From: Macrostomum lignano
Lineage: Eukaryota
Assembly: GCA_002269645.1 (NCBI GenBank)
Contig: NIVC01000647.1
Location: 1 to 64,000, forward strand
DNA: 64,000 nucleotides
Direction: 5' to 3'
Below the pieces are notes generated by a model. It had not been told where the DNA came from. It saw nothing but the letters and a program-made list of their open reading frames with translations, and searched no databases. Every line of letters starts with the position of its first letter. Positions within the stretch are counted from its first letter, which is position 1. The position numbers were made by a program, and so were the translations under genes. Shown in pieces: positions 1 through 37,020 of this stretch.

Positions 1-180
1 ATAGCCAACACTCACGATGCAGGAATAAATGGATTGCTAATCTAGCCAGCATCACTGATGAAGGAATAGAATGGATTGCTAATCTAGCCAACATCACTCA
101 TGGGATGAAGGAATATAATGGATTGCTAATCTAGCCAGCATCACTGATGAAGAAATAGAATGGATTGCTAATCTAGCCAA
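1..180. repeat. Tandem repeat, about 43-47 bp unit (core ATGGATTGCTAATCTAGCC), cut by the window start
   Basis: The core GGATTGCTAATCTAGCC recurs four times, with ATAGCCAACA-like remnants at the window start. Confidence 0.8.
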
Positions 181-765
181 TTATCAAGCGCACTGAGTAA
201 CCCGGATGAAAAGCTGCTGCAGTCCTTAGCTGATCAATAATCTGCAGGGAATTACAAGCTGATGCCATCATCCTTAAGCCACGGATGGGGTAAAAAGTAG
301 AAAAGTACACAGTAGTAGAAGCTTCAAACTTTGGGAGGGGAACCCAGATCGTTAACCTATTAGTCAAGGCATTTGGCTTTGACATTTGAAATCCAGCAGC
401 ACGTAGTAAACGGCGAATCAGGGCTGCGCTCACTCGCAAATGATCCATCAATCATGGATGGCCAATCTAGCTGGTTCGAGTTTAAAAGACAACTATTTAG
501 AATAATATTAGATATATAAACGGTTTAACAGAGGCGCAAAATACATTTTAATTTCCACTACCAGCAGTTGGTATCGTGTGTGGTCCAGCAGAGTATAGAA
601 AAAGCCTTGGGAAGATGGGAAAAGACGAGAGAGAGAGAGAGAGGAGAGAGTCGAATGGGGGAGAGAGGCAGTAGGGGATTCCCTGATCGGACCAAAGGAA
701 GGGGGGCGAAGCGTGCAGCGAGAAGTGGATCGCGCTCGGACGGGGGAGCCCGGGCAAGAGAAGAG

Positions 766-813
<48 letters not shown>

Positions 814-2280
814 GAGAGAGCGCGAGAAAGATAGCAAAATGGCTTAGTTGCCAGGGTTTTTCGAAACGAATGACGGAGTTTATCCAGCCTGGCGCATTGC
901 CCAGTTCTGAATTGCCCTGAAAGTGGGGGAGGGAGCTGGGGGAGCTAAAAGAGGGGCAGGGCAGGGCCGGTGCTGCACTCGAGTGTCTCTGCAGCTTGGC
1001 TGCAAAGAATGCCGCATAATTCAAGCTATACGGTGGTGCTGCACCATGCCTAACCGAATCCAGAGAGAGAGTGTGTGTGTGCGTGGCCAGCCCACCGCAT
1101 CGCCTGCATGGGAGAGTCTAAAAAAGCGCAACACCCACCCCGCCTCTGAGCCATCGAAATGGGATGTCACCCTGCTAACGGGGGACGATTTATGCTAGAG
1201 AGGTTTTGGGTTTTGTATGGGGCGCGACCCGCCTACCAGGAGTTTATGCGCGTTTCGGTTGAAACCGAAGCGCGGTCACTGCATGAGTTCGGCCATGTAT
1301 TTTTCATAGGCCGGCAGAATGGGATGGGGAGGGAGGGTTGCTTGATTTCCCAGCAACTGCAGGCTGCTGCAGTGTAGCAACAAATTTATGGCAGCATACC
1401 GAGCCGCTGAGTCAATTAACCACAACAGCATGCATGAGTTCTTAGAGCAAAAACGCATCAAAGTATCTTATAGTATTTTCTGCCTGCCTCTAATGTTTTA
1501 CTCTATTTACATGAAAATCATATAGAAAACTGGACGAAAATGCATCAGTAGCGACAGCTTAAATACAAAAACAGCGAAAAAACTACAACTGGTTCTTAAT
1601 TGAAGAATCTTTTTGTAAGGAAGCTCAGAATTGTTATGCTGAAAATGACGATTTACATTTTTTGCAGCTCATGTATACTCAGCAACATCGAAAAGTCGCC
1701 ATCACAGAACATTCCGTCTGTGGTCGCCACTTTTAAGAGAGCAAGTAAAGTCTCAATCTCAGTGACGCAACTCAGCTACGCAGACTTGAGTTGAGGAATG
1801 AAGTGGGGAGCGGTGTGCGAGGGTTGGGCGGATTAAAGCTATTAAAGATATTTCAGAATAGTTTATGAGAAAGCGCTCACTGGCTCATAGAGTGGCGAAT
1901 TTTTAATGTTGCTGAGTATATACTCCGAAATATACATTTATCTTGCTTCAAAAATCTGACATACTCGCACCTGTATAATAAACAAAATCGATTGCTTTCA
2001 AATCTGCTTTGAGCAAAATAATTTGCAGCGAGGCCATTTGTCGTTGTGGGAACCGAGACATTTAAACAAAATGATAAACATTCTTTGTCTGAGACACCCG
2101 TTTCCACTTTTCAGTCCCCATCTTCTAGAAAACTTTAGATTTAGTTTAAATTTTGCAAACGAAAATAGCCTCGCATGATGAGAATAATTTGCAGATACCA
2201 GTAAAAGCAAAACGCTAATGTATAATGTACAGCATCTGAATGAATACTTAAAGCAGGAGCTGAAGGACGGATTTGTTATA

Positions 2281-5267
2281 TCATAATTTCCGGTTCAATA
2301 AGCAAACGGCCGCGCTACTGTCATGGTGCAGTCTCGGTTGTCCAAGCTGATCCACCCTAACAGAGCATTTCGTCAAGATGTGCCTGATAACTTCATCGGT
2401 CTTCACATGGCGCTTATCGTAGCGCTTGAGCATCTCCTTGAGCATCTGCCTGGCCTCAGTTGTACTATCTGTAATCAACGCTACCGCGTGAAGCTCTTCA
2501 AAGTCGGCACTCCGCCAATCGCCGCGGACATCATCCAGAAAGGCTTTGGTAGCAGATCCAGCTTGATCAGGGCTATCAGAGAAACTCATTCGCAGAAGAT
2601 ACAGCAAAACAACAAAGTTCAAGTAGACTCTCCTCTCGTGAAACGGCAACACGCTGGGGAAGCACGCCCGGCAGACCAGGTTGATCGACTGATCTCGATC
2701 TGGAGCGAACCGGATGCAGTCCACTGTTCCGTGGCCCATGCGACAGCAGATTCGCCACAGAGTGTCGTGGCCAGTCAGCTGACTCCAGATCGCCTCTTGG
2801 TTTTAGTTTTACTCAGTCCTTCCTTGATAGTCAAGTTTCGCAGAACGCGGCTGCTTTGATTGTCCAACAAAACCTTCCGTGCTGCTTCCTCATCGCCCAG
2901 TCTCATTAAGGCTAAGACTCTAAGGCAAATCTTGGCCGTATTAGCAAAGCTTGGAATCTTGTCTAGTTCGAGCATAAAATTCTGGGAAAGAGGCCTGTCT
3001 AACTTAATTAGCTCCATCAAGATCCGCTTGATTCGAATGTAAGCATTATGGTAGGCATCAGTCGATTCCTGGTCGCAAATTAACGAGAAGCCGAACGGGA
3101 ACAACGCAAACGGGTGCACTGATAAATATCCAGGATCTTCCAGCGGCTTCAGTTGATCTCGGAATTCAGTTATGTATCTGTCAATATTTCCAATCACATG
3201 GTTAATGTGCTCCACAATCTTGCATTTTGGGTAATGATCCTTTTTAAAAAACAAAATGGTATCTTTTAGGAAGAAATGCGGCATGCAGTACTCTTCAATG
3301 TTGGACTTTTCTGTCATATAGTTTCGCAGCATGTGTAGAGCTGTAATCAATAGGGTTCGAAAATTCTCCGTCTTCCAAGCTTCTTTCGGCGTCTTCTTCA
3401 ACATAAACAGCTGTATGGACTTGGCGTGGTAAGACTTTAAACCGAAACTTTCGTGTTCTGCAGTGCGAATACCGAGCACTTTCTTGACAATGTACTTGAG
3501 AATAATATAGAACTGACCCTGCTCAGTGGTCAGTGAGCGGAGAACAATCCTCTCCAGAATTGATGTGCTCACTCTCAATTGAGTTCCTTCCTTGTTCGGC
3601 GTTCCCGCGCGGATCAGATGGCAAGGATACTTTGGTGACTTTACTGCGTTACAGAGCTTCTGAAGCACTTCATCTGGAAAGTGTTCCTTGTCTTCTACCG
3701 AAGCAAGCATGCTGATTTCCGGATAGCCACACGCTGCATATGAGTAAACAATATCCATGCTGGGTGTCACATGCGATGCCTGGGTTGTCATCGCTGGCTG
3801 CGACACTACAATTATTAACAAGAGGCACGGGAGTCTGTAGATGCCAATTATATTTCAAAGATTCAAATAGCAACAGCCATGCCAAACTTACCAACAGAGC
3901 GTTTAATTCTAATGTGCCCATTCTTGTAGATGTATTTCATGCCCTCGTCAATAGCGCACTGGCAAGCACCTTGGATGTGATAGCTCTGTCCCAGCATTAT
4001 CTCGGTGAAGTCTATGTCCGACTCTCTGCTGACCGAGCCATCCACTGAGCTCAGATTGCAGCCCCAGCCGTCGCCGAAGCTGCCCAGGATGAAAATGGTT
4101 CTAGAATCCTTCTCCAGGTTATTTCCTTCTTCTTTTGGAAGAAAGACCTATAGACGCCCTGCACTACGTCGGCGGCAGCGGTTTGCACTCGCGATCGTTC
4201 CCTGGTGAAGCCTGCTTCAGACATCCTTTTGCTCAGCTCGTTCATATCGACAGGCTGCCTGAAAAACAAAAATTGTAGACATTTCCGCTTAACTTAAAAA
4301 TACGAGTAAACGCATTCACATGAGCATCAAGCTACAATCAATAGTAAGAAGCTTACAAAGAGCTACAGGCGGGTTTTTGTTCAGAACGCAAAGACGCTTC
4401 TGGATGAAGCAAATCGGCCAGCTCTTCGTTACCAAGGCTTTTGCAAATCTCAATGGCATGACGCCTCTGCTGCTCAGACACTCGGTCCCAAAGCAGGCGA
4501 GCGGTGGAACGGCGGTCGTAGGCGCAGCTCTGCGCCAGAGGGCACACTGTTGAACTGTCGGATTCATCGATATCCGGATTGTCACCCGAGCTCAGCAACA
4601 GCTTCACTACCGAATCGTGTCCGTTGCATGCAGCCAGCGATAGAGCTGTTTGTCCATCAGTACAGCGAGCCTCAATATTGGCTTGATAGTCGATGAGGAT
4701 CTTCACAATATCAACAAAGCCGCCTTCGGCAGCCGCCATGAGAGGTGTGTGACCGTCATCTCTGGCCAGCTCCGAGTCTGCACCAAGCCCGATTAGGAGT
4801 TCAACAATTTGCCGAAAGTTTGACTGGCACGCCACCCACAGGCAGGATTCTCCGTTGCTTCTGGTCGCGTTGTAATTGCAGCGAGAGTCAATCAGCAGTT
4901 TCACAATTTCGTAGAATCCGTAAGAAGTGGCCGTCCACAGGGCCGTCACGCCCCGAGAATCGGGAATCTCGGGATCGGCTCCCCCGTCGAGCAGAGTCTG
5001 AATGACTTCAATGTGCCCGTTGGCCGCTGCAATCCACAGTCCCGTCACATTGCCGTTTCGCAACTGAGCGTCGAGGTTAGCCTTCTTCTCGATGAGAACT
5101 CTGAGACAGTCTAAACAGACGTTCCTAGACGCGAACCAAACTGCAGTCTCGCCGTTTTTATTTTCGTAGTTGGGATCTACTCCGGTGTCGATCAAGTCGC
5201 GTAGCCGTCTCGACAGGTTTTCTTTCGCACATTTCAGCAGCTCTTCGCCAGAGTCTGCCGATGCCAT
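2281..5267 (-). CDS. Ankyrin-repeat + Mab-21/cGAS-like nucleotidyltransferase (cGLR-type), copy A; 3 exons, two apparent frameshifts
   Basis: Exon 1 (5267-4357) encodes about 7 ankyrin repeats (GETAVWFAS, GVTALWTAT, GHTPLMAAA, GQTALSLAA). Phase-2 intron 4259-4356 and phase-1 86-nt intron 3806-3891, both GT-AG. NTase motifs: ILGSFGDGWG...ESDIDF, SMDIV, LRVSTSILE, LKSYHAK, CMPHFFL. A helical C-terminal region follows. Frameshifts at about 4130 and about 2800. Confidence 0.85.
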
Positions 5268-5717
5268 TCAGGCAGATCTGAGTGGCATTGCTGCTGCAGA
5301 GGAGTGGCTTCTTCAGTTCTTTTGCTTAGTACCTTTTAATTGGCACCGGTATGAATTGGTTGAAACGAGTGTTTATAAGCGGCTACGAGCTATGTGCTTG
5401 TGTTTATGATATAATAGCTGAATATAGAGTAGCTTACTATAAATGAATGAGCATCGCAGCTATATAAACAGAACAATTAAACTGTACAGTGTACCGTGCA
5501 AAATGTACAGCGCTGCCTTGTACGGGCGCACTGTTACGGAGAAAGCCTAAAAAAAGGTACTTCATGCCCGCATACGCTCGTGCTCATGCACGAGTACACT
5601 TAGCCTGACAAATTCAAAAAGGAACATAAGTTCCTCTCTACCAATCTACTATGGATGACTCACACTCACCGGCCAACCATTCTCTGTCTGTGTCTGGCTG
5701 CTGAAATGCGCGCTCAC

Positions 5718-6302
<585 letters not shown>

Positions 6303-6493
6303 GGCTTACAGACTGTAGGGCAAGATAAAAACCAAAAGGCAACAATTTACCTCGTACTTTTTAAACTGAAACAATGCCAATTCAAAGTGCGGCATGCGAT
6401 ATTTACTATGGGGTTAGAATGGTTTGGCATGCGGAATAAAAAAATTCCTATATGAAAAAAATTCCTGCCGATCTACAGTAGATACATGTTAGG

Positions 6494-9400
6494 TTAAACA
6501 TCGGCAAGTCTATTGAAACAGGCTTTTGCGTCAGAGTCGTGACGGACAGCCGAACAGTCAACTTTCCGACCAAGAATTTGATTGATGAGGACGTCCGTCT
6601 TCTCGTGACGCAAATTGAAAAGTCTGCGCATCGCCTGCAAGGCCACTCGCTTTTTGTCCCGATCAGTGGCGAGCTGAGCGGCTGCAAACAACTCCTCGAA
6701 ATCAGCGCCTCTGCAGCTGTGATCAATGACAAGTTGCGACCAAGCGAGGCCGCGGTCTGTATCAGAGGGATTCAGAAGTCGCAGTCTGAGGAGCTGCAGC
6801 AGCACTTCAAAGTTCAGGTACAGCCGCCTGTCGTGGTTTGGTATCCGGCTGGGGAAGCACGCCCGGCAGACAACGGGAGAGAAGCTCTCGTTGTCTTCAA
6901 AATCGATCCGGCAGCACATTCGCCACATTGAATCGCAGCTTTTCAACTGCTCCAAGATGTTCAGCTTGATACTCTCGAAGCTGCTTTCTTTGTCTGCACT
7001 GACAGACAGGTATCGACAGGCAGTAAACTCGCTGTGCTCGAGTAGTAGGCGTCTGGCATCTTCGTTTTCACCTTGACGAATGAGCATCAACACTTTTAGA
7101 CAGAGCTTGGCAGTGCGAGCGAACTCTGGTAGACAGTCAATACCCGAGCCAATGTCTTCCGGCAGCGCGCTGTCCTTGGCTATTCCAGTGTAAGCTTCAG
7201 GCACTTCTTGATGCGAATGTAGGCATTGTGAAACACATTCTCCGACTCTGTCGAATCGTCAAACAGAGAAAAGCCGAATGGAAAAAGCGTAAAAACATGC
7301 AGCGAAAGATGATCGTTGCATTCAAGTGGCTTCAGTTGATTTTTAAATTCGACCAAGTATCGATCGATATTTTCAATCACGTGACTAATGAGCTGTATGA
7401 TCCTAGACTTTGGGAGATGGTCTCTCTTCAAATACAACACCGCATCCTTCAGAAAGAAATGCGGCATGCAGTACTTCTCATCGTCTGAGTAGTTGTTCAT
7501 AAAAGACTTTAGCATAGCGAGCGCTGAGATCAGCAGCTGGCGAAGATTATCGACTGACCACGCGTCGCTGTCAGTTTCCTTCAGCATGAAGAGCAGCAGC
7601 GATTTCGCGTGATACGATTTGAGGCCAACGCATTGGTACTCTTCTCTTCTAGTACCAAGCACTCTCTTGATGATGAACTTCAGTAGAATGTAAAACTGAC
7701 CCTGCTCGGTGCTCAGCGAGCGTAGAACTATGCTCTCCAGGATTGAAGTGCTCAATCTCAGCTGAGTGCCCTCTTCGTCTGGCGTTCCAGCGCGTATTAG
7801 CTGAACCAGGTGCGTCACCAGTGCGACTTCTTTTTTCAGCAGTGCCGTGATTTGCTTTGGAAAGTGCTTGCAGTCCACTTCACTGTCGGTTACAATGCTC
7901 AGTGCTGGATAGCAGCAGGCGGAATAGGCGTAAACAACGTCCATGCTGGGCGTTACAGGAGACGCCTGAGTTGTCATGGCTGGACGCGAACCTAAATTTA
8001 TTGGTTTATTGCGAGAAATGTATTGGTAATTTTTTGGATAATATTCTTTTAAGTTCGAGAATGGAAGAAAAACTAACCAACAGTAAGTTTTCCGGCAAGC
8101 ATAACGTGTCCGCTTGTAGACAACCTTTTCCTCTTCAGACACGTCTTTGCACTTGCAAAAGTTCTTCAGGTGAAACTTTTGGCCACGCATGATCTCTGCG
8201 AAATCAATATCGGAGTCAAGGCCTATGGAACCGTCCGCTGTGCTGAGATTGCAGCCCAAGCCATCGCAGAAGCTTCCAAGAACATAGAAGTTGTCGATAT
8301 GAAAATAACACCTGAAAATGTCTTGCACAATATCAGCTGCGGCGGCGATGACTAGCGACTTTTCCTTTGTAAATCCTGACCGCTTCATTTCTGCCGATAA
8401 TTCACTAAAATATTTAAGGAATTTAGCTCCGATTTTTCATATATGTCCATCATGTGTGGGGCAAAATGTTCTCGTCGTTTCAAATAATCTACTTAAGAAT
8501 TTAAAATCGAAAAAAAATATTCCGGGCATTTACCCCATATCTAGACAATATGCCGACGATTCTTGACCTTGAAGATCTTGAAGATCTTCAAGAACTTGAA
8601 GAAGCGCTTTCAGCTCTTTGCTACCAAGGCTTTTGCAAATCTCAATGGCATGACGCCTCTGCTGCTCAGACACTTGGTCCCAAAGCAGGCGAGCGGTGGA
8701 ACGGCGGTCGTAGGCGCAGCTCTGCGCCAGAGGGCACACGGTTGAACTGTCGGATTCATCGATATCCGGATTGGCACCCGAGCTCAGCAACAGCTTCACT
8801 ACCGAATCGTGTCCGTTGCATGCAGCCAGCGATAGAGCTGTTTGTCCATCAGTACAGCGAGCCTCAATATTGGCTTGATAGTCGATGAGGATCTTCACAA
8901 TATCAACAAAGCCGCCTTCGGCAGCCGCCATGAGAGGTGTGTGACCGTCATCTCTGGCCAGCTCCGAGTCTGCACCAAGCCCGATTAGGAGTTCAACAAT
9001 TTGCCGAAAGTTTGACTGGCACGCCACCCACAGGCAGGATTCTCCGTTGCTTCTGGTCGCGTTGTAATTGCAGCGAGAGTCAATCAGCAGTTTCACAATT
9101 TCGTAGAATCCGTAAGAAGTGGCCGTCCACAGGGCCGTCACGCCCCGAGAATCGGGAATCTCGGGATCGGCTCCCCCGTCGAGCAGAGTCTGAATGACTT
9201 CAATGTGCCCGTTGGCCGCTGCAATCCACAGTCCCGTCACATTGCCGTTTCGCAACTGAGCGTCGAGGTTAGCCTTCTTCTCGATGAGAACTCTGAGACA
9301 GTCTAAACAGACGTTCCTAGACGCGAACCAAACTGCCGTCTGGCCGTCTTTATCAGCATGGTTTACTGAGGCGCCTGCGTCGACGAGTCTCTTTAATTCC

Positions 9401-9501
9401 TTGTAATCATTTTTTTCAGCTACTCGAAGTAGTTGTTCGCCTTCAGCCGATATAAGGTTTTGATCGGGGATATGCTGCTCCAGACTCGCACGTGTAATCA
9501 T
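6494..9501 (-). CDS. Ankyrin-repeat + Mab-21/cGAS-like nucleotidyltransferase (cGLR-type), copy B; two apparent frameshifts
   Basis: The ankyrin ORF 9501-8530 is nearly identical to copy A. Probable phase-2 intron of about 8406-8533 and homologous 86-nt intron 7992-8077. Motifs: VLGSFCDGLG...DSDIDF, SMDVV, LRLSTSILE, LKSYHAK, CMPHFFL. The C-terminal ORF 6494-7204 is homologous to copy A (VCRACFP, LYLNF, GADFEEL). Frameshifts at about 8112 and about 7190. Confidence 0.85.
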
Positions 9502-10340
9502 GGTCGTGAAAGCTTTTCTACCAGACGTACGAGCGTAAAGATTAGATCGAAAACTCTAAGTGGAACTTGCTGTCATGCGTATTTACGTTTCACTCTGAGC
9601 ACCCGAAGTTTTCTTGCCCTTGCTGCAAAATTCAGTGTACACGCTGCACATGCGCTGTACGCGAGACTGTACTTTGTGCGTACACTGGTGTGGAAGTCAA
9701 TTACCCTGTCTTTTAAAATTCGAAAATCAATTTTATTAATAAATAGTGAATTCTATCAAGACCATTGTTTACTTATTAAGGCTTTGAATATAGCATGCCG
9801 CATTTCAAACCGAAGCGGCTAAAGTAAACTTGTAAGCTTGTAACTTGTATGTAAAATCATATTAAAAGTAAATATTATTGGAAGTATGAGGTCCAACTTG
9901 GATTTTGATTTATTGAAGCAAAAGCCATTGTACAGCAAATTATAACTTCAAACTCTCGACCACCCAGGAAGAAAATCTACTTAGCGAATAGAAAAATATC
10001 TGAAAGTTATGAAGATTCACAACACCGTTGCAGATAATTTTGATGAGAAGTTCAGGCCAGACCCTCACAGTCCTCGTCATCTCCAGCAGATCTGGGAAAG
10101 TGCAGGACGTAATTAGCTGCTAAAAGTCATTGCTGATAGTTTACTCTCATCAAAGTTTGGCACGGTTGGCCCCAATGGGACCCATTGCCTTGGAGAGATG
10201 GCCTGGGCAGCCGCCTACGATATCAGGCCTAGTTGTTAGTTCGTAGTTGGTGTCGACACGCCAAGCGACACGCTAAAAATCCCTTGTGGGCATCATTTCC
10301 TGCTCAGTTTACGGTCTGCCATCTAATTTCTGCATTGCAG

Positions 10341-12596
10341 GCGGCCGCATGTGGTTCTACGGAAGTGCGGAGACATCGTGGATCGAGATGACACGCTCCG
10401 ATGGTCCCGAAACCATATCCGGGCATCAGGTCTTCTTTCAGACGTGCTGCAAACTATTCGGCAAGGGTCAGTTAATGTGCAGTTTTGATGTGGAAATTTC
10501 TAGATTTTCTTCTCATAAAGATTTAAATTGGTTTCTAATTTTAGACGGATAGAAATCCTGCCCAAGCCCAAGTGCCTTAGCTTACTTCTTACTGGAAAAA
10601 TCTACCATAAAAAGTCCGGCAATGTGCTAACGATAAGGGCAGGAGCACAGTTTGCCTCATTTGAGTGGCTTACTGGACTCCGTGCTCATTTAGATTATTT
10701 TAGACAAAGCGCGTCCATGTCTCCCCAATGGCACTTTTACCCCCACTGTGCACGGACTTGATCCCGCCTGGTTCCGTTTCTTCAGTGTTTTTAAGTGACA
10801 CGTTAATCGATTAGGCTCAGGGCTCGGTCTCAATAACTGTGTGGTTTGTTTTCTTCGATTGAGAGCTCCGGCTTGAGTATTGCTAGCACATTTCGGAGCA
10901 AGGGAAGCTTCAGGAAATTGGGACAGAAAAAACTATCCAATATAGGCAGACAAATACGCCAAACTAGAACTACAGCACACAGTGGAGCTGAACTAGATGC
11001 CGTCGAAGTATATGTTGTATTTTGTTTATTGAAGCATAAATTTTGCTTTATTTCTTCCAGACTTTGACGAAAATAGCGACGGATCCTGCTACACAATCAG
11101 TCCCGGTTTCCACCAGTTTCCATTCAAGTTTCAACTGCCAGAAAGGCTGCCTTCATCATTCGAATATTACTCAGAGACAGGCCGAATCAAGGCGCGCATT
11201 ACATTCAACGTCAAGGCGGAAGTTGAAAACGCGAAGCGCTCGGCCAGTCATAGTCGGGAGCGAACGATACTAGTTGTGAATTACTATGACTTGAACGCTC
11301 ACCGTCATCTTATTGTAAGTGATTCGCCATAATCAGTAATGAGTACGAGCATGATGAAGGAATAGAGCAATGCTTAGTAGAAAACGCCGTCGAAATCTCT
11401 AGAGCGTTACAAACAGTCGTCATAACCGTTTAACCATGATGCGACATTTCGAATCAAAATTATCATCCAGGATCGGTCTGCTTGAAAAAGGAGATCTCCC
11501 TAGCCTATTGCTGCGTGAGCAAAGGACGGATAATCTGCGAATTATCGCTGGCAAAAACTGGCTACGTACCTGGCGAGACAATGGACATTAGCGTGCACCT
11601 GTTCAACAGTTCCTCGCCTGCGTCCGCAGCACCCACATCACCTTCCAGCAGCGCGTGTTCCTGTCGGCAGGCAGTCATAGGAAAGTGGCCTCGGCGCTGA
11701 TATTCAGCATCTCTGGCCAACGCGTCAAACCCGGCGCTTCGGGTTATTACCACGACGTGATCCACATCCCACCTCTGCCGCCAACTGGAATGCCGCACTG
11801 CGAGATTATCGATCTGGAATATGTGGTGCAGGTGAGTACTGAAGTTTTTATGCATTTGAAGACGCAAGACAGTTTCTTATTGCTAGATTTGAATCATTTT
11901 TCTTGCATCAGTAGAACTCAGAAGAAGCTAGCCGTTGACGGGACTAGCCGCACATAGTCACTAGCGGGAACTTACCAGGTTTTGATCGAATTCGCGATAA
12001 ACCAATTCAGACACGCGAGCTAAATTAGCTAGCTTAGGACAGTCAACAGCTATAAAATGCAAGCATCAATAGAAAGGCGTCAACGCTAAAACCCCAAATC
12101 AAGCCGAGACCAGTTCTGCCTAATAAAACTGCTTCTGAGCGAGTCTGGCACACGAGACGGAACTCAATTAATCCCATGCTGCCAAATGTAACGAATTTCG
12201 ATTTCGATTCCGCACCAAGCCAGCTTTAACTTCGGCAGCCTCTCTCGGTCCTCTGCACCCGACTCAATCTTGCCGATTTTTTCTTCTTCTGGTTTCTTAG
12301 TTAAGACTCCTTAGCTAGGGAATAGCATGCTTGAGCATTGCTTTAGTACAAATCATTGCTATTATTGATCCGATCCGCGATGCCACAGAACATGCCGCTG
12401 CTTGAAAAAATCGAATGCCAACGGAGCGGATGAAGGCAAGATGTACCCCGAGAACAGAGAGCACTTTATTACATCGCGTTTTAGAAGTTGGGAAAAGTAT
12501 TACCCAAAGTGGTGCTCAGATAGGGTTTTTTCGGTGCATGACATGGCTGTCACATGGCTACCACAAAAAGTTACTTACGCAATTGAACTGGATTAG

Positions 12597-14983: not shown

Positions 14984-17900
14984 ATGCCGCGTCACTCCAA
15001 ACATCTCGTAACGACGGGTCGTCTGTCCTCGATGGATCGGCAGGCTCGAGTCCGCGGCGGCAACAATGAACTTCTCGACGAACTCCGACGTCAGAGGCAT
15101 CGGAGACAGCAGCAGAAGGAGCCGGAGCGAATCAGCTTGGCTGACGACTACCTGGCTTCCATGAGCAACGAGGATGAAGGTCTGTACGAAGCCCGGATGC
15201 GGTATCTGCGGAAGGAAAGGCGACCCAGTCAGAGCAGGTGAGATTTAATCACCGATTTTTAGTAGGCTGCCAGCGAAGGTTTCTTAGCATTGTTGCGATC
15301 ATGCAGAGAAGCGTGGCTGAGTCTCTTGATTCCTGAGAAGGACTCATCCTCCTTATACTAAAAGTGATGCGTTGTTTGTTTGTCTGTATGTGTGTTGCAA
15401 TTTTTCTCCTAAACTACTGGCAAGTCAGCGTTGAAACTTATATGGGTAAACTGCAAATTTTCCGGACTGGGTTTATAGCAATTTTAATCTTTCATTTTTA
15501 CATTTTAAGATCCCTAAAAAAGCAGAAAACTGATTTCCTAACCTTCTTTGGCCCTTCTGTGGCCACTCTGCCTCTCCAGTGGAGGGGTTGCAGTCTGTTT
15601 GTAAAAATAGCCACCCCAACCTCCGCCCGCGGGTCGCTGTGTTTTTTGGGGGGGGGGGGGGTGGGTGCGCGTGTTCTGCGTTAAATGCAAAACCCCCGCG
15701 TGTTGGGGGGTTCAATTAAATTTAACGATTCCCCCGGAATGGGGGGTTGGGCTTGGGCTGAGTGTACATAGCAGTTGTACAGTGTAAGGAGATAGCTAGG
15801 ACTGTGTCGAGATTTAATTGGTTTTATTATCGGCGCCATTCAATAGGCAGCCATGTGTATTTGCTGGGCAGTGAAATTCAATGAATAAACTTGCGAGCCT
15901 CTTTAGCAGGTAGTGAACATACACTCGATACTTCAATGCTTTAAATCGGGAAATTTCAAACGCTAACTATTCCTTGAGTTTTAAACTTTCAGAGAGACTT
16001 ATATTGCTGGAAAGATCTTGCAATACTGAGTTCGGGGATATAAGTTGTTTGCTTTAAATGTGAAAACAAAAAAGCACAGCATTTAAAAAACAATTTCCAT
16101 ACTTTTAACTTTCTGCAGAGTGTACTCATTTTGGGTTCAAAGGGGGTTCGACCAACCCCCAACAGTTGGAGGGGAGTTCAACTTTTAATTGCCACTGCGT
16201 ATTGGAAGGGGGTCAGTCGCTGTGTATTGGAGGGTTGATTTAGTTTGCGCAATCTTTTTGTTAACTTTAACTGAGACTGATACTGACTGACTGTTAAATC
16301 GGTTGCGCAATGAATTGATTCAATTAGTTCAATTTTTTATCGACGCCTTTCAACACACTGCTGCGTGTAGCTCTAACCCTAACCCTAACCCTAACCCTAA
16401 CCACTGAATCCTGAGAGTTGATTCTTTTTGACGGAGAAAATTTCGATTCAGTCCATTTTTATGGAGAGAATTTCTGTTTTGCGGAGACGATTTTAATGGA
16501 TGTCAGTTTCACGGAGAGGTGTTTGATGGAGTTCTCTTTTACGGAGAGGATTTCGATGATGTTCAATTTCGCGGAGAGGAGTTGGATGATGGGTTTCATG
16601 GAATGGCATTTCAGGGAATGGAGTTCCGGTGATGGGAATTCTTCCCCTTTCTCCTCCAGAGGAGGAGTTGGCCTCGTATATACTAAAAATGAGTTGTCTG
16701 TGGGTAGGTAGGTATGCGATAGATTTCAGAAAAAATGGCTCAACCGATTTTCTTCAAACTTGCACCATTCGATCAGAAATTTTCCTGGGATGGTACATGC
16801 ATATTGGCTAAGAAATTGCTCAATGTTAAAGGGATTAAATATTCGAAAAACATGCTTTTTTGCAAAGGTCAAGCAGCTCTTTCGACCTGAAATGCGTTGT
16901 AAGAATGCTAGAGAAAAAACTGACTGACTGAATTCCGATTGTGATAAAGATTGCATCACAACAAGTTGAAAACAGTACCGAAGAAATGCACACACGACTT
17001 GATTTAAATTGCGTAACCAATATTGCTAACTTGAATTGAGACTGATACTGGCTGACTGAGAAATTGATTATGTCATAACTTTTTACTCTATTTTACTCTA
17101 ATTGACTTGCTGTAAGAATTAAATTATAAGGGCCACAATGCATGTTCTCCAATTAAAAAGGGATAGCCTCGATGCGAGCAGACTGGACTGCTAATGTAGC
17201 GGCCTGGGTTCGAATCTTAGTAGTGCAAAATAATTTTTTTATTAAAAAACCTTAAAGACACAAAATGCAAAACATAAAAGAGCCACCATGTAAAACATAA
17301 AAGAGCCACCATGTCAAACATATATGTGACTCCATGTCAAACATATACGTGACTCCATGTCGAGCATTAAAGAGCTACCATGTCAAAACATTAAAGAGCC
17401 ACTATGTCGAACATTAAAGAGCCACCATGTCAAACATTAAAGAGCCACTATGTCAAACATTAAAGAGCCACCATGTAAAACATAAAAGAACCACCATGTC
17501 AAACATACAGAGCCACCATGTCAAACACTAAAGAGCCAACATGTCGAAGATTAAAGAGCCACCATGTCAAACATTAAAGGGCCACCATGTCGAACACTAA
17601 AGAGCCACCATTTCAAAAACTAAAGAGCCACCGTGTCAAACATTAAAGAGCCACCATGTCAAACATATATGTGACTCCATGTCAAACATAAAAGAGCCAC
17701 CATGTAAAACAATAAAGAGCGACTATGTCGAACATTAGAGAGCCACCATGTCGAACATAAAAGAGCCACAATGTCGAACATTAAAAAGCCACCATGTCAA
17801 ACACTAAAGAGCCACCATGTCAAACACTAAAGAGCCACCATGTCGAACATAAAAGAGCCATGATTTTGAACATTAAAGAGCCACCATGTCAAACATATAA

Positions 17901-20900
17901 GAACCACCATGTCGAACATATATGTGACTCCATGTCAAACATAAAGAGCCACCATGTCGAAGATTAAAGAGCCACCATGTCAAACATAAGAGCCACCATG
18001 TCGAAGATTAAAGAGCCACCATGTCAAACATAAGAGCCACCATGTTGAAGATTAAAGAGCCACCATGTCAAACATAAAAGAACCACTATGTCAAACATAA
18101 AAGAACCACCATGTCAAACATAAAAGAGCCACCATGTAAAACAATAAAGAGCCACCATGTCAAACATACAGAGCCACCATGTCAAACACTAAATAGCCAC
18201 CATGTCAAACAATACAGAGCCACCATGTCGAACATTAAAGAGCCATGATTTTGAACATTAAAGAGCCACCATGTCGAACATATGTGACTCCATGTCAAAC
18301 ATAAGGAGCCACCATGTTAAAGATTAAAGAGCCACCATGTCAAACATAAGAGCCACTATGTCAAACATTAAAGAGCCACCATGTCAAACATGAAAGAACC
18401 ACCATGTCGAACATATATGTGACTCCATGTCAAACATAAAGAGCCACCATGTCAAACACTAAAGAGCCAACATGTCGAAGATTAAAGACTCACCATTTCA
18501 AACATTAAAGGGCCACCATGTCGAACACTAAAGAGCCAGCACTTCAAAAACTAAAGAGCCACCATTTCAAACATTAAAGAGCCACCATGTCAAACATATA
18601 TGTGACTCCATGTCAAACATATATGTGACTCCATGTCAAACATAAAAGAGCCACCATGTAAAACAATAAAGAGCCACTATGTCAAACATTAAAGAGCCAC
18701 CATGTCGAACATAAAAGGGCCACAATGTTGAACATATACGTGGCTCCCTGCCAAACATAAAAGATCCACCATGTCAAACGTTATTGAGCCACCATGTCAA
18801 ACATAAAAGAGACACCATTTCAAATGTAAAAAAGCTTCATACCAAACATAAGGGAGCCACTATAAAAGCTTAGGATATTATTGCACTAGCTACTTGTTTT
18901 CTCGGTGGATGCTTGCTATTTAAGGATAGATTATTGCTAGCTCGTATTAGGGGGATGCTTGCTATCGGAAGGATGCTTGCTATCTGGGGTAACCCAATTT
19001 TGGAGGATGCTTTCTCTCGGGGTGGAGGGTACTTTCTATCTGAGAGGGGGTGCTATAGCTATCTATAAGGATTCTTTGTATATAGGGATGCTTGCTATCT
19101 GGGTGGATTCTTGCTATCTGGGGGATGCTTGCTATCTGGGGGGATTCTTGCTATCTGGGGGATGCTTGTCAAACTCCATGTCAAACATATACGTGACTCC
19201 ATATCAAACATATTCGTGACTCCATGTCAAACATAAAAAAGCCACCATGTCGAACATTAAAGAGCCACCATGTCGAACATTAAAGAGCCACCATGTCAAA
19301 CATAAAAGAGCTACCATGTCAAAAATAAAAGAACCACCACGTCATACACATAAAAGAGCCACCATGTCAAACATTATTGAGCCACCATGTCAAACATAAA
19401 AGAGACACCAAGTCAAACAAAAAAAGACAAAATTTGAAACGAAAAAAAAGAAGCGTCATGCTAAACAAAATGGAGCCATCAAACATATTCGTGACTCCAT
19501 GTCAAACATTAAAGAGCCACCATGTCAAACATTTAAAAGCCACCATGTCAAACATTAAAGAGCCACCATGTAAAACATTAAAAAGCCACTATGTCAAACA
19601 TTAAAAAGCCACTATGTCAAACATATACGTGATCCCAAGTCAAAAATAAAAGGGCCAACATGTCAATCATAACAGAGACTCCATTTCAAACGTAAAAGAG
19701 CCGCCATAGCAAACATAGAAGAGCCACCATGTAGACATTAAACAGCTACCATGTCAAACATGGAAGAGCCACCATGTCAAACATTAAGAAGCTATCATGC
19801 CATACATTAAAGAGCCACTATGTCAGACATAAGAGAGCCACCATGTTAAACATTAAAGAGCTACCATGTCGAACATAAAAGAGCTACCCCATGTCAGACA
19901 TAAAAGAGCCAACCATGTCAAACATAAAAGAGCCACCATGTCAAATATTAAAGAGCCACCTTTTTAAACAAAAAGAGACACCATTTCAAACATAAAAGAA
20001 TATTCATGCCAAACAAAATGGAACCATTATAAAGCTAAGTAAATTGTTGCACTAGCTACTTGTTACCTGGTGGATGCTTGCTATTTAAGGATGGATACTT
20101 GCTATCATGGGGATGCTTGCTCTTGGGGGTGGGGAGTACTTGCTATCTGAGAGGGGGTTGCTAGATATCTATAAGGTCTTTTTGTATCCAGGTTATGCTT
20201 GCTATCAGGGGTTGCTTGCGATCTGGGGGATGCTTGCTGTCTGGGGGATGCTTGCTATCTGGGGGATGCTTGCTGTCTGGGGGATGCTTGCTATCTGGGG
20301 GATGCTTGCTGTCTGGGGGATGCTTGCTATCTGCGGGATGCTTGCTATCTGGGGATGCTTGCTGTCTGGGGGATGCTTGCTATCTGGGGGATGCTTGCTA
20401 TCTGGGGGATGCTTGCTATCTGCGGGATGCTTGCTATCTGGGGGATGCTTGCTATCTGGGGGATGCTTGCTATCTGGGGGATGCTTGCTATCTGCGGGAT
20501 GCTTGCTATCTGGGGGATGCTTGCTGTCTTGGGATGTTTTGTTTTTAAGAGGGATGTCAGTTGTTTTTTTATAAAGGCTTTATTTCGCTGTTTATTTGTT
20601 ATTTGTAAAGAACAAGGATTCTATCCAGATGTCCCCCATCGGGGGGCAAAGATTGCTAGTCCTATATACTAAAAATGAGTTGTCTGTGGGTATGCGATAG
20701 ATTTCAGAAAAATTGGCTCAACCGATTTTCTTCAAACTTGCACCATTCGATCAGAAATTTTCCTGGGACGGTACATGCATCTTGGCTAAGAAATTGCTCA
20801 ATGTTAAAGGGATTAAATATTCGAAAAACATGCTTTTTTGCAAAGGTCAAGCCAAATTTTCGACTTGAAATGCATTGTAAGAATGCTAGAGAAAAAACTG

Positions 20901-23900
20901 ACTGACTGAATTCCAATTCTGATAAAGATTGCATCACAACAAGTTGAAAACAGTGCCGAAAAAATGCACACACGACATGATTTAAATTGCGTAACCATAT
21001 TGCTAACTTAAATTGAGACTGATACTGGCTGACTGAGAAATTGATTATGTCATAACTTTTTACTCCAATTGACTTGCTGAAAGAATTGAATTATAAGGGT
21101 CACAATTTATGTTCTCCAACTAAAAAGAGATAGCCCTGATGCAAACAGACTGGAATGCTAATGTAGCGACCTGGGTTCGAATCTTAGTAGTGCAAAAAGA
21201 TTTTTTTATTAAAACACCTTAAAAACACAACAAAACTGCTAAACATCAAAGAAGCGCACTGTCAAACATAGAAGAGCCAACATATCGAACATAAAAGAGT
21301 TACCATGTCAAACATAAAAGAGCCACCATGTCAAACATAAAAGACCCACCATGTCAAACATAAAAGACCCACTATGTCAAACATAAAAGAGCCACCATTT
21401 CCAACATTAAAGAGCCACCATTTCCAACATTAAAGAGCCACCATTTTGAACATTAAAGAGCCACCATTTTAAACATTAAAGAGCCACCATGTCGAACATT
21501 AAAGAGCCCCCATGTCGAACATTAAAGAGCCAACATGTCAAACATTTAAGAGCTACCATGTCAAACATTTAAGAGCCACCATGTCAAACATTTAAGAGCC
21601 ACCATGTCAAACATTTAAGAGCCACCATGTCAAACATTTAAGAGCCACCATGTCAAACATATATGTGACTTTATGTCAAACATTCAAGAGGCACCATGTC
21701 AAACATATATGTGACTTTATGTCAAACATTAAAGAGCCACCATTTCGAACATTTAAGAGCCACCATGTCGAACATAAAAGAGCCAACATGTCAAACATTT
21801 AAGAGCTACCATGTCAAACATTTAAGAGCCACCATGTCAAACATTTAAGAGCCACCATGTCAAACATTTAAGAGCCACCATGTCAAACATTTAAGAGCCA
21901 CCATGTCAAACATATATGTGACTTTATGTCAAACATTAAAGAGCCACCATTTCAAAAACTAAAGAGCCACATTGTCAAACATTAAAGAGCCACTATGTCT
22001 ACCATAAAAGAGCTATACCATGAAGAACATTAAAGAGCCACCATGTCAAACATAAAAGAGCCACCATGTAGAATATTAAAGAGCCCCATGTGAAACATAA
22101 AAGAGCCACCATGTCAAACATTTAAGAGCCCCCATGTCAAACATATATGTGACTTTATGTCAAACATTAAAGAGCCACCATGTCGAACGTTAAAGTGCCA
22201 CTATGTGTAACATAAAAGAGCTACATCATGAAGAACATTAAAGAGCCACCATGTTAAACATTAAAGAGCCACCATGTGAAACATTAAAGAGCCACCATGT
22301 GAAACATTAAAGAGCCACCATGTCAAACATTTAAGAGCTACCATGTCAAACCTAAAAGAGCCACCATGTCGAACATAAAAGAGCCACCATTTCAAACATT
22401 GAAGAGCCACATTGTCAAACATTAAAGAGCCACTATGTCTACCATAAAAGAGCTATACCATGAAGAACATTAAAGAGCCACCATGTCAAACATAAAAGAG
22501 CCACCATGTAGAATATTAAAGAGCCCCATGTGAAACATTAAAGAGCCACCATGTCGAACATAAAAGAGCCACCATGTCAAACATTTAAGAGCCACCATGT
22601 CAAACATATATGTGACTTTATGTCAAACATTAAAGAGCAACCATGTCGAACGTTTAAGTGCCACTATGTGTAACATAAAAGAGCTACATCATGAAGAACA
22701 TTAAAGAGCCACCATGTTAAACATTAAAGAGCCACCATGTGAAACATTAAAGAGCCACCATGTGAAACATTAAAGAGCCACCATGTCAAACATTTAAGAG
22801 CTACCATGTCAAACCTAAAAGAGCCACCATGTAGAATATTAAAGAGCCCCATGTGAAACACTAAAGAGCCACCATGTCGAACATAAAAGAGCCACCATGT
22901 GAAACATTAAAGAGCCACCATGTCAAACAATTAAGAGCCACCATGTCAAACATTAAAGAGCCACTATGTCGAACATTAAAGAGCCACCATGTCAGACATT
23001 AAAAAGCCACCGTATCAAACATAAAAGACTTACCATGTAGAACAAAAAAGAGCCACCATGTCGAACAAAAAAGAGCCACCATGAAGAACATTAAGGAGCT
23101 ACCATTTTGAACATTAAAGAGCCACCATGTCGAACATTAGAGAGCCACCATGTTAGATATTAAAAAGAGCCACCATGTCGAACATAAAAGAGCCACCATG
23201 TCAAACATTTAAGAGCCACCATGTCAAAAATATATGTGACTTTATGTCAAACATTAAAGAGCCACCATGTCGAACATTAAAGATCCACCATGTCAAACAT
23301 TAAAGAGCCACCATGTAAAACATTAAAGGGCCACCATGTAGAACATTAAAGAGCCACCATGTCGAACATTAAAGAGCCACCATGTCAAACATTAAATAAC
23401 CACCATGTCGAACATTAAAGAACCACCATGTCAAACATTAGAGAGCCACCATGTAAAACATTAAAGAGCCACCATGTCAAACATGTATGTGACTTTATGT
23501 CAAACATTAAAGAGCCACCATGTAAAACATAAAAGAGCCACCATGTCGAACAGTAAAAAGCCACCATGTCGCTTGCTATCTGGGGGTGCTTGCTATCTGG
23601 TGGTGCTTGCTATCTGGGGGTGCTTGCTATCTGGAAGTGCTTGCTATCTGGGGGTGCTTGCTATCTGGAAGTGCTTGCTATCTGGGGGTGCCTGCTATCT
23701 GTGGTGCCTGCTATCTGGGGGTGCTTGCTATCTGGGGGTGCTTGCTATCTGGGGGTGCCTGTTATCTGGGAGAGCCTGCTATCTGGGGATGCTTGCTATC
23801 TGGTGGTGCTTGCTATCTGGGGGTGCTTGCTATCTGGAAGTGCTTGCTATCTGGGGGTGCTTGCTATCTGGAAGTGCTTGCTATCTGGGGGTGCCTGCTA

Positions 23901-26900
23901 TCTGGGGTGCCTGCTATCTGGGGGTGCTTGCTATCTGGGGGTGCTTGCTATCTGGGGGTGCCTGTTATCTGGGGGTGCCTGCTATCTGGGGGTGCCTGCT
24001 ATCTGGGGGGTGCTTGCTAACTGGGGGTGCCTGCTATCTGGGGGGGGGGTGCTTGCTATCTGGAGGTGCTTGCTATCTGAGGGGATGCTTGCTGTCTTAG
24101 GATGTTTTCTTTTTGCATTGCACTTCATCTGAGCAGTTTTTCTATTGACTATGTGAAGGCTTTGTTTGGTTATCTTATTGATACTTGTAGAGAACAGAGA
24201 TTCTATCTAGATGTCCCCCATCGGGGGGCGAAGATTGCTAGTCCATATACTAAAAATGGTCTGTCGGTATGTGTGTGTGTGTGTGTGTGTGTGATCGATT
24301 TTAGCAAAAATGGCTCAACCGATTTTCTTCGAACTTGCAACATTCGATCAGAAATTTTTCCGTGACGGTACATGCATCGTGGCTAAGAAATTGCTCAATG
24401 CTAAAGGGATTAAATATTCGAAAAACATGCTTTTTTGCAAAGGTCAAGCAGCTCTTTCGACTTGAAATGCATTGTAAGAATGCTAGAGAAAAAACTGACT
24501 GGTTGATTGAATTCTGATTCTGAAATAGATTGCATCATCACAATAGGCTTTTATTTATCGTCTGTGTACTGGCTGAATTTTGACACTTAATTGAATTACG
24601 TCACAGTATCGAAAACGCAGTGTGGAAGCATAGCACAATACTTGATTTATCTTGCGTAACCATATAGCTAACTTTAATAGACTGGTACTGACTTGCCTAA
24701 GAAATTGATTATGTCATAACTGCCTCATGTAACTTTTACTCAATTGACTTGGTGTGAGTGTTGAATTATAAGTGCTACAAATTCATTTAATTTCAGTGAG
24801 AGCTAGCCTAGATGTAAACAAACTGGACTACTAATGTAGCTACCTGGGTTCGAATCTTAGTAGTGTATAAAAGAATAAAAGTAGCATAAATTTTTTATTG
24901 AAAGCTTTTATTAAAAAACTAATTAAAAAGACCTGGGTTATGGATTGTAAACCAAGGATTATTGCACTTGATAAACCAAGGATTATTGCACTTGATAGAC
25001 CAAGGATTACTGCACTTGATAAAACAAGGATTATTGCACTTGATAAACCAAGGATTATTGCACTTGATAAACCAAGGATTATTGCACTTGATAGGCCAAG
25101 GATTACTGCACTTGATAAACCAAGGATTATTGCACTTGATAAACCAAGGATTATTGCACTTGATAAGCCAAGGATTATTGCACTTGATAAGCCAAGGATT
25201 ATTGCACTTGATAAGCCAAGGATTACTGCGCTTGATAAACCAAGGATTACTGCACTTGATAAACCAAGGATTACTGCACTTGATAAGCCAAGGATTTCTG
25301 CACTTGATAAACCAAGACTTATTGCACTTGATAAACTAATGATTACTTCACTGGATAAACCAAGACTTACGGCACTTTATAAACCAAGGATTACTGCACT
25401 TGATAAACCAAGGATTATTGCACTTGATAAACCAATGATTATTGCACTTGATAAGCCAATGATTATAGCACTCGATAAGCCAAGGATTACTGCACTTGAT
25501 AAGCCAAGGATTATTGCACTCAATAAGCCAAGGATTACTGCACTTGATAAACCAAGGATTACTGCACTTTATAAGCCAATGATTACTACACTTGATAAAC
25601 CAAGGATTATTGCACTTGATAAACCAAGGACTACTGCGCTTGATAAACAAAGGATTACTGCACTTGATAAGCCAAGGATTATTGCACTTGATAAACCAAG
25701 ATATACTGTACATGATAAGCCAAGGATTACTGCACTTGATAAACCAAGACTTACTGCACTTGATAAACCAAGGATTTCTGCATTCGATAGGCCAGAACTT
25801 ACTGCACTTGATAAGCCAAGGATTACTGCACTTGATAAACCAGTGATTACTGCACTTGATTAACCAAGAGTTACTGCACTTGATAAACCAAGGATTACTG
25901 CACTTGATAAACCAAGACTTACTGCACTTGTTAGACCAAGGCTTACTGTACTTGATTAACCAAGGATTTCTGCACTTGATAAAGGAAGGATTACTGCAGT
26001 TGATAAGCCAAAGATGACTTCGCTTGATAAGTCAAAGATTTCTGCACTTGATAAACCAAGACTTACTGCACTTGATAAACCAAGGATTACTGTAGTTTAT
26101 ATACCAAGAATTACTGCACTTGATAAACCAAGGATTTCTGCACCTGATAGACCAATGATTACTGCACTTGATAGACCAAGGCTTTACTGCACTTGATAAA
26201 CCAAGGATTACTGCGCTTGGCAAACAAAGGATTACTGCGCTTGATAAGCTTGGCTACATGTATGGGATTCTTTCTATCTAGGGATGTTTGCTTTTTATGG
26301 ATTCTTGCTAACTGGGTGGATGCTTGCTATCTGGGGGATGCTTGCTGTCTGGGTGGATGCTTCTACAATATCTGGGGGGGGGGTGCTTGGTATCTGCAGG
26401 ATGCTTGCTGTCTGGGTGGATGCTTGCTATCTGGGGGATGCTTGCTGTCTGGGGGATGCTTGCTGTCTGGGTGGATGCTTCTACAATATTTGGGGGATGC
26501 TTGCTATCTAGCTGGATGCTTCTACAATATTTGGGGGATGCTTGCTATCTAGCTGGATGCTTCTACAATATTTGGGGGATGCTTGCTATCTGCAGATGCT
26601 TGCTATCTGGGTGGATGCTTCTACAATATTTGGGGGATGCTTGCTATCTGGGTGGATGCTTCTACAATATTTGTGGGATGCTTGCTATCTGGGTGGATTA
26701 TTCTACAATTTTCGGGAAATGCTTGGTGTCTGCAGGATGCTCGCTCTCTGGGTGGATGCTTGCTACGAGTATTAGGGGATGCTTGCTATCTGCGGTTGCT
26801 TACTTTTGGAGGGGGTGCTTGCTATCTGGAGGGATGCTTGCTGTCTTTGGAATATTTTCTATTTAGGGGTAGGTAATGTCTATTATCTTTGTGAAAGTTA

Positions 26901-29420: not shown

Positions 29421-29726
29421 GAAATTCGTTGTTTAGAAACTCCAGCAACACTCGTACGACAAAGTCATAAAAGCCAGATGCTCGATTTATTGCTTCATTC
29501 TCCATCTGCATGTCATAAAGTCCAGACTGTCGCTAAAACCAAACGAGCCAAAAGTGGGACATGCTGTACTTTTAAAGCACTAATTTTTTGACCGGGTGCC
29601 TTTTTTCAACATACTCTTGAGAGACGTGAAAAATAAAGATTCACCCGAGTTTTCCTTTTTTATGCGTTGAATTGCGTCAATGCGTTTGATGTTAAAAAAC
29701 TGCCAAAAACTAGAATTGACCCTTTT

Positions 29727-30270
29727 CAAACCCCAACCTCACACCCTTTACAAACCCCAACCTCACAACCTTTCCGAACCCCAACCTCACACACTTTCCA
29801 AACCCCAACCTCACAGCCTTTCCAAACCCCAACCTCACAACCTCTCCAAACCCAAACCTCACACCTTTTCCAAACCTCAACCTCACAACCTCTCCAAACC
29901 CCAACCTCACAACCTTTTCAAACCCCAACTTCACAACCTTTCCAAACCCCAACCTCACACCTTTTCCAAACCTCAACCTCACACCCTTTCCAAACCCCAA
30001 CCTCACAACCTCTCCAAACCCCAACCTCACACCCTTTCCAAACCCCAACCTCACACCCTTTCCAAACCCCAACCTCACACCCTTTCCAAACCCCAACCTC
30101 ACACCCTTTACAAACCCCAACCTCACACCCTTTCCAAACCCCAACCTCACACCCTTTCCAAACCTCAACCTCACAACCTCTCCAAACCCCAACCTCACAC
30201 CCTTTCCAAACCCCAACCTCACAACCTCTCCAAACCCCAACCTCACACCCTTTCCAAACCTCAACCTCAC
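29727..30270. repeat. 24-bp minisatellite (AAACCCCAACCTCACACCCTTTCC)
   Basis: Direct read. Confidence 0.92.
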
Positions 30271-32889: not shown

Positions 32890-33009
32890 GCACCGCACCG
32901 CAAGCCGGGGCATCACTGAGGAACTCACAACTTATTACCGTCATCCCAAACCTTCCTTTTGGTCCATTCCGATCTTCTCAGCTCGACTCTCCACTGACTC
33001 ACTCAAACC

Positions 33010-36195: not shown

Positions 36196-36408
36196 CAGCC
36201 TGGAGAAAAATGAGAAACGCGAGTGCTTCTGTGTGCAGAACTGACGTTTTCTAGAAGTCAAAAAGCGGCAGTAAGAGTTCAGAAATAAATAGAGCGCTTG
36301 GCACAGTAGCGGAAATCGTTTCAACTGTATTCTTGAGCAGCCGTGAACGAGGGTACGTGGTCAGCAAATACAAATATTTCCTCTGATTTTTTGTAAACAA
36401 TGATTCGC

Positions 36409-36662
<254 letters not shown>

Positions 36663-37020
36663 CTGTAAAATTGAAACGCACCCTCGAGCTGAGGCTGGCG
36701 ACGCCTCGCATTGAATTTTCCTTTCAAAGTTCTTCTTTAACCCTCCATGGAGGTGCGGCTCTGGGAACTGGGGAGGCTGCTGGCTGGAAGACTTAAAGTA
36801 CACGAGCTTCATCATTTTCTCAGCTTCCTTTCGCCCATCAGCCAGTCCTTGGTGGCAAAGCAAGATGCAGTGCAGAAGCTGGGGTTGCCATGCCAGAAAA
36901 CGGGGGGATTAGACACGGGCTGATTTCTTTGGGGAAATTCCTGTCAAAGCACTTCCCCGCCCCCAGCCACAATGTAGCATTGGAGACGAGAGGCTAAAAC
37001 TGTTATTTCCTACATAGCGA

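Follow-up and report, generated by a model that had tools for sequence, protein, structure and literature searches.

Are two adjacent genes at the end of a Macrostomum lignano contig working members of the cGAS-like receptor (cGLR) class, and what might an enzyme of that class be doing behind an array of ankyrin repeats? Recent work has brought the cGLRs to notice as a major class of pattern-recognition receptors in animals, most of them with neither ligand nor product known. The genes in question, here called A and B, lie on the minus strand at positions 2281-9501 of the window, by which we mean the whole stretch of DNA that was analysed (the first 64 kb of contig C647, NIVC01000647.1, from an assembly of 764 Mb in 5269 contigs). 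A preliminary description of this stretch had read them as a tandem pair of active ankyrin-fused receptor-enzymes. We find that its observations are confirmed – though most were already known – and that its interpretation is partly supported. A and B very probably belong to an ankyrin-fused cGLR (ANK-cGLR) family, and the overall explanation that we favour, with moderate confidence, is that they are two old tandem paralogues within a large family of this kind in M. lignano.

Exon models built from GT-AG sites resolve the locus into two head-to-tail paralogues of three exons each, offset by 4.19 kb. Direct repeats between the two genes, at spacings of 4192, 4183, and 4195 nt, bear out the ~4.2-kb period given in the preliminary description. 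The introns of A (98 and 86 nt) and of B (129 and 86 nt) occupy homologous positions, fall in phase 2 and then phase 1, and all have GT-AG borders. Exon 1 of gene A (4357-5267, minus strand, as for all exons here) starts with an ATG at 5267-5265 that is immediately preceded by an in-frame TGA; it encodes an acidic domain of about 7-8 ankyrin repeats and a linker, and ends at the phase-2 donor TT|GTAAGC. Exon 2 (3892-4258) encodes the N-lobe of the nucleotidyltransferase (NTase), comprising a spine helix, the GS loop LGSFGDG (4087-4067), and the metal-binding pair ESDIDF (4024-4007). Exon 3 (2281-3805) supplies the third catalytic Asp (PSMDIV, 3764-3747), the LRVSTSILE, KSYHAKS, and CMPHFF motifs, the Mab-21_C domain, and a C-terminal domain of ~240 amino acids (aa).

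Gene B repeats this plan. Its exon 1 (8534-9501, with the ATG at 9501) encodes an ankyrin-repeat domain and ends at the phase-2 donor GG|GTAAAT, exon 2 (8078-8404) encodes an NTase N-lobe with LGSFCDG (8280-8260) and DSDIDF (8217-8200), and exon 3 (6494-7991) encodes the third Asp (PSMDVV, 7950-7933), LRLSTSILE, KSYHAKS, Mab-21_C, and the C-terminal domain before a TAA stop at 6496-6494. All of the motifs quoted when the pair was first described are therefore present. In the models of both genes the ankyrin exon is joined to the NTase exon by phase-matched GT-AG junctions. The spliced product of gene A matches a public protein of 936 aa, P0001 (BOX15_Mlig022265g5), at 100% identity; P0001 has the same exon junctions, and no encoding contig is on record for it.

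We observed that both reading frames are interrupted in the window copy, which carries six single-base deletions relative to five contigs (C673, C328, C2079, C3494, and C5143) that are colinear with window positions 1-12000 at 98.3-99.3% identity. The approximate deletion sites are 4128, 2797, and 2285 in A and 8113, 8111, and 7186 in B; the one near 2285 alters just the final residues and stop codon of A, and the other five are frame-breaking. At the three breaks first seen, one extra base is present in all five of the other contigs. In those contigs exon 2 of B reads VVYKAGHVMLAGKLTV| with the donor G|GTTAGT, a sequence that brings back the family motif Y..GH together with a donor homologous to that of A.

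Two pairs of contigs reveal the origin of these breaks. C647 and C3494 share an 11.5-kb overlap with 21 mismatches and 46 gap openings, and C673 and C328 share a 7.2-kb overlap with 2 mismatches and six one-base gaps. The members of each pair are overlapping contig ends of the same haplotype, yet they carry different one-base coding deletions, and for that reason the frame breaks in the window must be assembly errors. Each window deletion also falls at or beside a position that is variable in the other contigs, a pattern typical of consensus errors in noisy long reads. We conclude that A and B are intact in the real genome and that the frame breaks in the window are consensus errors at a contig end. 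The assembly broke twice at this locus, the two contig pairs overlapping end to end across both genes, so that the six copies of A and B represent about four haplotypes or homeologues.

The same errors account for two features of the window that we considered and rejected. A 418-aa open reading frame (ORF) at 7180-8436 crosses the second intron of B, which it runs through because of the two exon-2 deletions. It could be taken for a genuine exon, or the alternative donor TACT|GT could be taken as the end of exon 2, but both are ruled out by the two additional bases, the Y..GH motif, and the A-homologous donor in the five other contigs. Likewise, a 47-nt mini-intron across the first frame break of A is ruled out by the extra base in all other contigs and by P0001, which reads through. 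Many single-base deletions relative to C3494, the sister contig of the same haplotype, are spread over the first ~10 kb of C647, so ORF-based readings there meet false frameshifts.

These observations bear directly on whether the window copies might instead be decaying pseudogenes with real frameshifts. Five frame-breaking deletions among six in two coding sequences invite that reading, and three features of gene B add to it: a collection of 5.8 billion proteins contains no full-length B-like protein, one-base deletions are commoner in B copies than in A copies of the other contigs, and the C2079 haplotype carries a 2,051-bp 5'-truncated long interspersed nuclear element (LINE) inside exon 3 of B (~17107-19157 of that contig). 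The LINE ends in a 3' tail of short repeats, is flanked by a target-site duplication of 9 bp, TTCTCTGCC, and includes an ORF of 653 aa in which a YADD reverse-transcriptase motif is present. Set against this are the differing deletions of contigs from near-identical haplotypes, the restriction of the lesions to single-base deletions at or beside haplotype-variable sites in the window, and the fact that gene A is intact in three contigs. With one-base gaps ignored, moreover, every contig copy of gene B is free of stop codons, and its variation among haplotypes (proportion of synonymous differences, pS, 0.02-0.03; ratio of nonsynonymous to synonymous proportions, pN/pS, 0.3-0.5) indicates a gene under constraint. 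We consider pseudogenisation very improbable, indeed effectively excluded, and the frame breaks in C647 should not be taken as a sign of it. The lack of a full-length public protein model means that gene B is unannotated.

Haplotype variation differs sharply between the two genes. Among the ~four haplotypes A is near-identical (pS ~0.002), whereas B, 1.2 kb away, is tenfold more divergent. This difference could reflect a sweep, or conversion between haplotypes, confined to A.

As to the domains of the two genes, Pfam Ank_2 matched the first exons of A and B (E 2.6e-49 and 3.8e-58, respectively), and Mab-21_C (PF20266) matched the third exons at 28.6 and 29.6 bits against a gathering score of 24.1. 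An AlphaFold2 (AF2) model of full-length A, built with a family alignment of 51-53 sequences as input (predicted local distance difference test, pLDDT, 87.2; predicted TM-score, pTM, 0.83), contains seven canonical helix-pair ankyrin repeats and an N-terminal cap pair. When this model was used for a fold search of the PDB, it matched ankyrin and DARPin structures alone, including the ankyrin domain of RNase L, and the NTase ORF was therefore refolded by itself. The resulting model of the B NTase ORF (pLDDT 84.2, pTM 0.86) gave a different picture: the top 50 Foldseek matches in the PDB were all cGAS, Sp-cGLR1, Cv-cGLR1, or MAB21L1 (E 2e-7 to 4e-6, probability 1.0).

The likeness to human and mouse cGAS, Sp-cGLR1 (8gjy), and Cv-cGLR1 (8gjw) covers the bilobed Mab21 NTase fold and a series of aligned elements: the GS loop, both metal-binding acids and the third Asp, together with the R.S.S..E strand and SYH.K helix. 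Comparing an alignment of M. lignano NTases with a small cGAS/cGLR alignment, hhalign returned 99.2% probability (E 1e-18) and matched GS to GS, SDID to EFD (E225 and D227 in the human enzyme), and PA.D, which is PSMD in A and B, to SVD (D319). Gene A residues G363-S364, D385, D387, and D444 thereby occupy the positions of human cGAS G212-S213, E225, D227, and D319. The GS, DxD, and Asp columns are kept in 46-51 of the 53 family members, whose overall identity is ~30%. The cGAS/cGLR fold and catalytic signature proposed for the pair were thus recovered by structure, by profile alignment, and by conservation. On this footing A and B are predicted metal-dependent nucleotidyltransferases, and we judge it fairly probable that they are catalytically competent.

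The remaining part of each protein is a conserved, family-specific C-terminal domain with the motifs LPD.ARTARE.L, DSAWKF, FP, NF.AL, and AD.QEL. It has no credible sequence relative in Pfam or the PDB, the best matches being a designed helical protein (E 0.0014) and, in one family member, TPR_8 (E 0.016). A phmmer search of the PDB with the NTase and C-terminal part together gave one weak match, 8gjy (E 0.027). The architecture first put forward – ankyrin repeats, a cGAS/Mab21-fold NTase, and a further C-terminal region – holds.

We next consider how the pair evolved. Outside the ankyrin repeats A and B differ at pS ~0.78 (saturated) and pN 0.26-0.34, and their proteins share ~47% identity over the NTase and C-terminal part and 55-57% over the NTase ORF. 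These values indicate that A and B are old tandem paralogues that evolve under purifying selection. The ankyrin domains, in contrast, are 99.6% identical. A 715-bp tract on the minus strand (5144-4430 in A, 9336-8622 in its partner B) contains only 3 mismatches, its first ~560 bp being identical, and yields two amino-acid differences over ~250 ankyrin residues; it is sharply bounded, with identity falling to 30-60% in the flanks. The three differences between the A and B tracts recur in nearly all contigs, which implies a single conversion older than the haplotype split and rules out ongoing, independent conversion in each haplotype. Gene conversion has thus placed one ankyrin surface on two different enzymes. 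With that surface in common and their enzyme halves different, A and B may convert a single input into distinct outputs.

The pair belongs to a large family. A search of the M. lignano contigs with the B NTase ORF found at least 108 places (100 of 999 candidates scored), and a PF20266 search of the assembly found at least 144 loci above the cut-off (150 of 385 candidates scored). When 1.84 billion representative proteins were searched exhaustively with HMMER, 157 relatives were returned, 72 of them at E<=1e-10, and the sampled top ones were all from M. lignano. Among the best 51 members, 44 have Mab-21_C and 36 have ankyrin repeats, in arrays of very different lengths. Many of the family loci are clustered on the same contigs. 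PF03281, by comparison, is found at three loci alone, on contigs C401, C402, and C835, which are the canonical mab-21 orthologues.

One of the top 51 members also carries a caspase domain (Peptidase_C14, E 2.7e-25). This fusion, if the gene model is right, would tie the family to cell-death signalling. A scan of seven long family members did not recover that protein.

To our knowledge, STING is the only animal receptor for cGLR products. PF15009 gave no candidates in the assembly, and the best match to the human STING ligand-binding domain had E 1.8 and internal stops, in searches that had no positive control and that a multi-exon gene could escape. Six-frame hidden Markov model (HMM) searches of the same kind do find Mab-21 families in this genome, where the genes have long exons. 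The literature yielded nothing useful on flatworm STING.

How much of this was known? Li et al. 2023 (PMC9980059) list PAA45980.1 (BOX15_Mlig022265g3) in row 90 of their Table S3, as M. lignano cGLR no. 90, and their Table S2 places its Ank_2 domains at residues 10-233. PAA45980.1 represents gene A in an allelic or homeologous copy, and the sequence that was screened has H584R, a variant found in contig C5143. The screened construct was the catalytic part without ankyrins, starting at RERSRVQ (RERSRVQTAAADVV), and was cloned for a screen with poly I:C and dsDNA (ISD45) (PMC9980059). In the Note field of the table, actives carry a name, and the field is empty for PAA45980.1 and likewise for all five M. 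lignano proteins tested (PMC9980059), which implies that the 15 actives examined in detail did not include the catalytic domain of gene A.

As gene A was listed, cloned, and screened in that study, the core of the present finding is already catalogued. The earlier suggestion that the architecture may be uncharacterised in this lineage consequently stands only in part: gene A is on record as an ANK-cGLR, but its tandem partner B, the conversion of the ankyrin tract, and the size of the M. lignano family are not discussed there. What we add is modest: a second gene (B), the tract of conversion, an estimate of how large the expansion is, and an apparent absence of STING. According to the same paper, ankyrin or TPR modules occur in some cGLRs, and in most platyhelminths Mab21-like proteins are the only cGLRs (PMC9980059). 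Its ANK-cGLRs from Stylophora pistillata, a recognised class of uncharacterised function, resemble A and B in joining an N-terminal ankyrin array to a cGLR NTase core (PMC9980059). In M. lignano, however, the fusion dominates a lineage-specific expansion and comes with a further conserved domain at the C-terminus. S. pistillata also differs in having 7 STINGs, against none detected in M. lignano. We found no functional study of any ANK-cGLR in the literature.

These results suggest a mechanism by analogy with cGAS and the characterised cGLRs. In each protein an acidic ankyrin array at the N-terminus is followed by a flexible linker, a cGAS/Mab21-fold NTase of two lobes, and the conserved C-terminal domain; the enzyme would be kept inactive until a ligand or partner binds. 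That partner would be engaged probably through the ankyrin array and possibly through the C-terminal domain. The three acidic residues could then coordinate Mg2+/Mn2+ and join nucleoside triphosphates into a nucleotide second messenger. The idea first proposed, that the ankyrins may act as sensor or autoinhibitor, is a reasonable one. An immune role is plausible from the size and clustering of the family; that A and B themselves act as immune sensors we put forward tentatively, as somewhat doubtful on balance.

Several observations set A and B apart from cGAS or weigh against reading them as competent sensing enzymes. Identity to cGAS and the cGLRs is 12-19%, and target TM-scores in the Foldseek comparison were moderate (0.40-0.59). 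Of the two Mab-21 profiles expected to match, PF20266 scored above its gathering threshold in both genes but PF03281 matched neither, leaving the N-lobe unrecognised in the Pfam scan. The spacing from GS to DxD is ~20 residues against 11 in cGAS, a loop ~9 residues longer, and no insert resembling the Zn thumb of cGAS was identified in A or B. Their catalytic domains are also neutral to acidic (isoelectric points, pI, of 8.3 for A and 6.3 for B, compared with 9.1 for the human cGAS domain) and stand beside a strongly acidic ankyrin domain (pI 4.7); the acidity of the B NTase argues against direct nucleic-acid sensing. To these points are added the empty Note entry for gene A, the failure to detect STING, and, for gene B, the missing public protein and the LINE-bearing haplotype.

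Part of this evidence would fit proteins that are not enzymes but, like MAB21L1 or MiD51, serve as Mab21-type scaffolds or as regulators that bind nucleotides; the NTase fold would then bind some partner or nucleotide but catalyse nothing, and the ankyrins would mediate protein-protein interactions. MAB21L1/2 share the fold (5eom is among the Foldseek matches), Pfam recognises Mab-21_C alone in A and B, and the catalytic domain of gene A is not among the published actives. Retention of GS, DxD, and the third Asp across nearly all paralogues at such low overall identity is nevertheless hard to explain without catalysis, and Mab21L1/2/3 are described as having no predicted functional active site (PMC9980059). 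The M. lignano orthologues of MAB21L1/2 are, moreover, separate single-exon genes that match PF03281 at E 2e-34, whereas A and B lack that match and conserve the catalytic residues. The majority of cGLRs in the published screen were inactive, according to its authors probably because the right ligand was missing (PMC9980059). We regard a purely non-enzymatic role as improbable.

A and B might also be active enzymes that are not STING-type cyclic-dinucleotide immune sensors. Such NTases might make linear 2'-5'-type oligonucleotides or another signal with a receptor still to be found – perhaps the ankyrin or C-terminal domain of the enzymes themselves – or might nucleotidylate macromolecules. 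The unusually long GS-to-DxD loop favours such chemistry, as does the presence on most members of a conserved C-terminal domain without known relatives, and STING went undetected where a like six-frame HMM search finds Mab-21 families. Ankyrin repeats can also bind nucleotides: the RNase L ankyrin domain, which appeared among the structural matches, binds 2-5A. On the other side, the closest structures are cGAS and the cGLRs; A and B have no Pfam match to OAS, and no OAS structure is in the Foldseek top 50. The absence of STING is itself unproven given the limits of the search noted above, and nothing here favours a particular alternative product. We consider this alternative unlikely and retain the reading of A and B as members of a large ANK-cGLR family. 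A bolder extension of that reading, which we offer as speculation and think quite unlikely, is that M. lignano has a STING-less form of cGLR signalling built from ~70 or more ankyrin-fused lineages, in which the C-terminal domain or an unknown protein would serve as reader or effector, variable ankyrin arrays would form the sensor surface, and the A/B pair would turn one input into two signals.

The surroundings of the pair are varied, and none of its neighbours in the window is obviously immune-related. A tetranucleotide microsatellite (5541-6301; strand not applicable) lies outside both genes, between the start of A and the stop of B; at ~0.7 kb it fills most of the intergenic space, and it translates as (LTYL)n in three frames. 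Just upstream of the B start, on the opposite strand, are arrestin-domain exons (11033-11957, plus strand; Arrestin_N E 1e-10, Arrestin_C E 2e-6). Farther along, a 285-aa ORF (41849-42703, minus strand) contains a TNP-like GTP-binding insertion domain (PF21788, E 2.5e-8) that suggests a remnant of a P-element/THAP9-like transposase, and two GDPD (PF03009) genes or fragments lie ~9 kb apart (48972-50120 and 58617-59462, both on the minus strand). Blocks of simple or short-period tandem repeats at ~20000-26900, 29600-30350, 33000-34050, 34670-36250, 36250-37930, and 52080-52715 give rise to spurious long low-complexity ORFs in several frames, and there are GC-skewed stretches at 32-40 kb.

Among flatworms, M. 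lignano emerges as an exception, with well over a hundred family loci, ankyrin fusions in most of the sampled members, and no STING detected. Testing may call for other constructs than those of the published screen, which lack both the ankyrin and C-terminal domains. M. lignano is an experimentally tractable flatworm, and it would be well suited to the questions of which inputs ankyrin-fused cGLRs respond to and how their product is read without STING.

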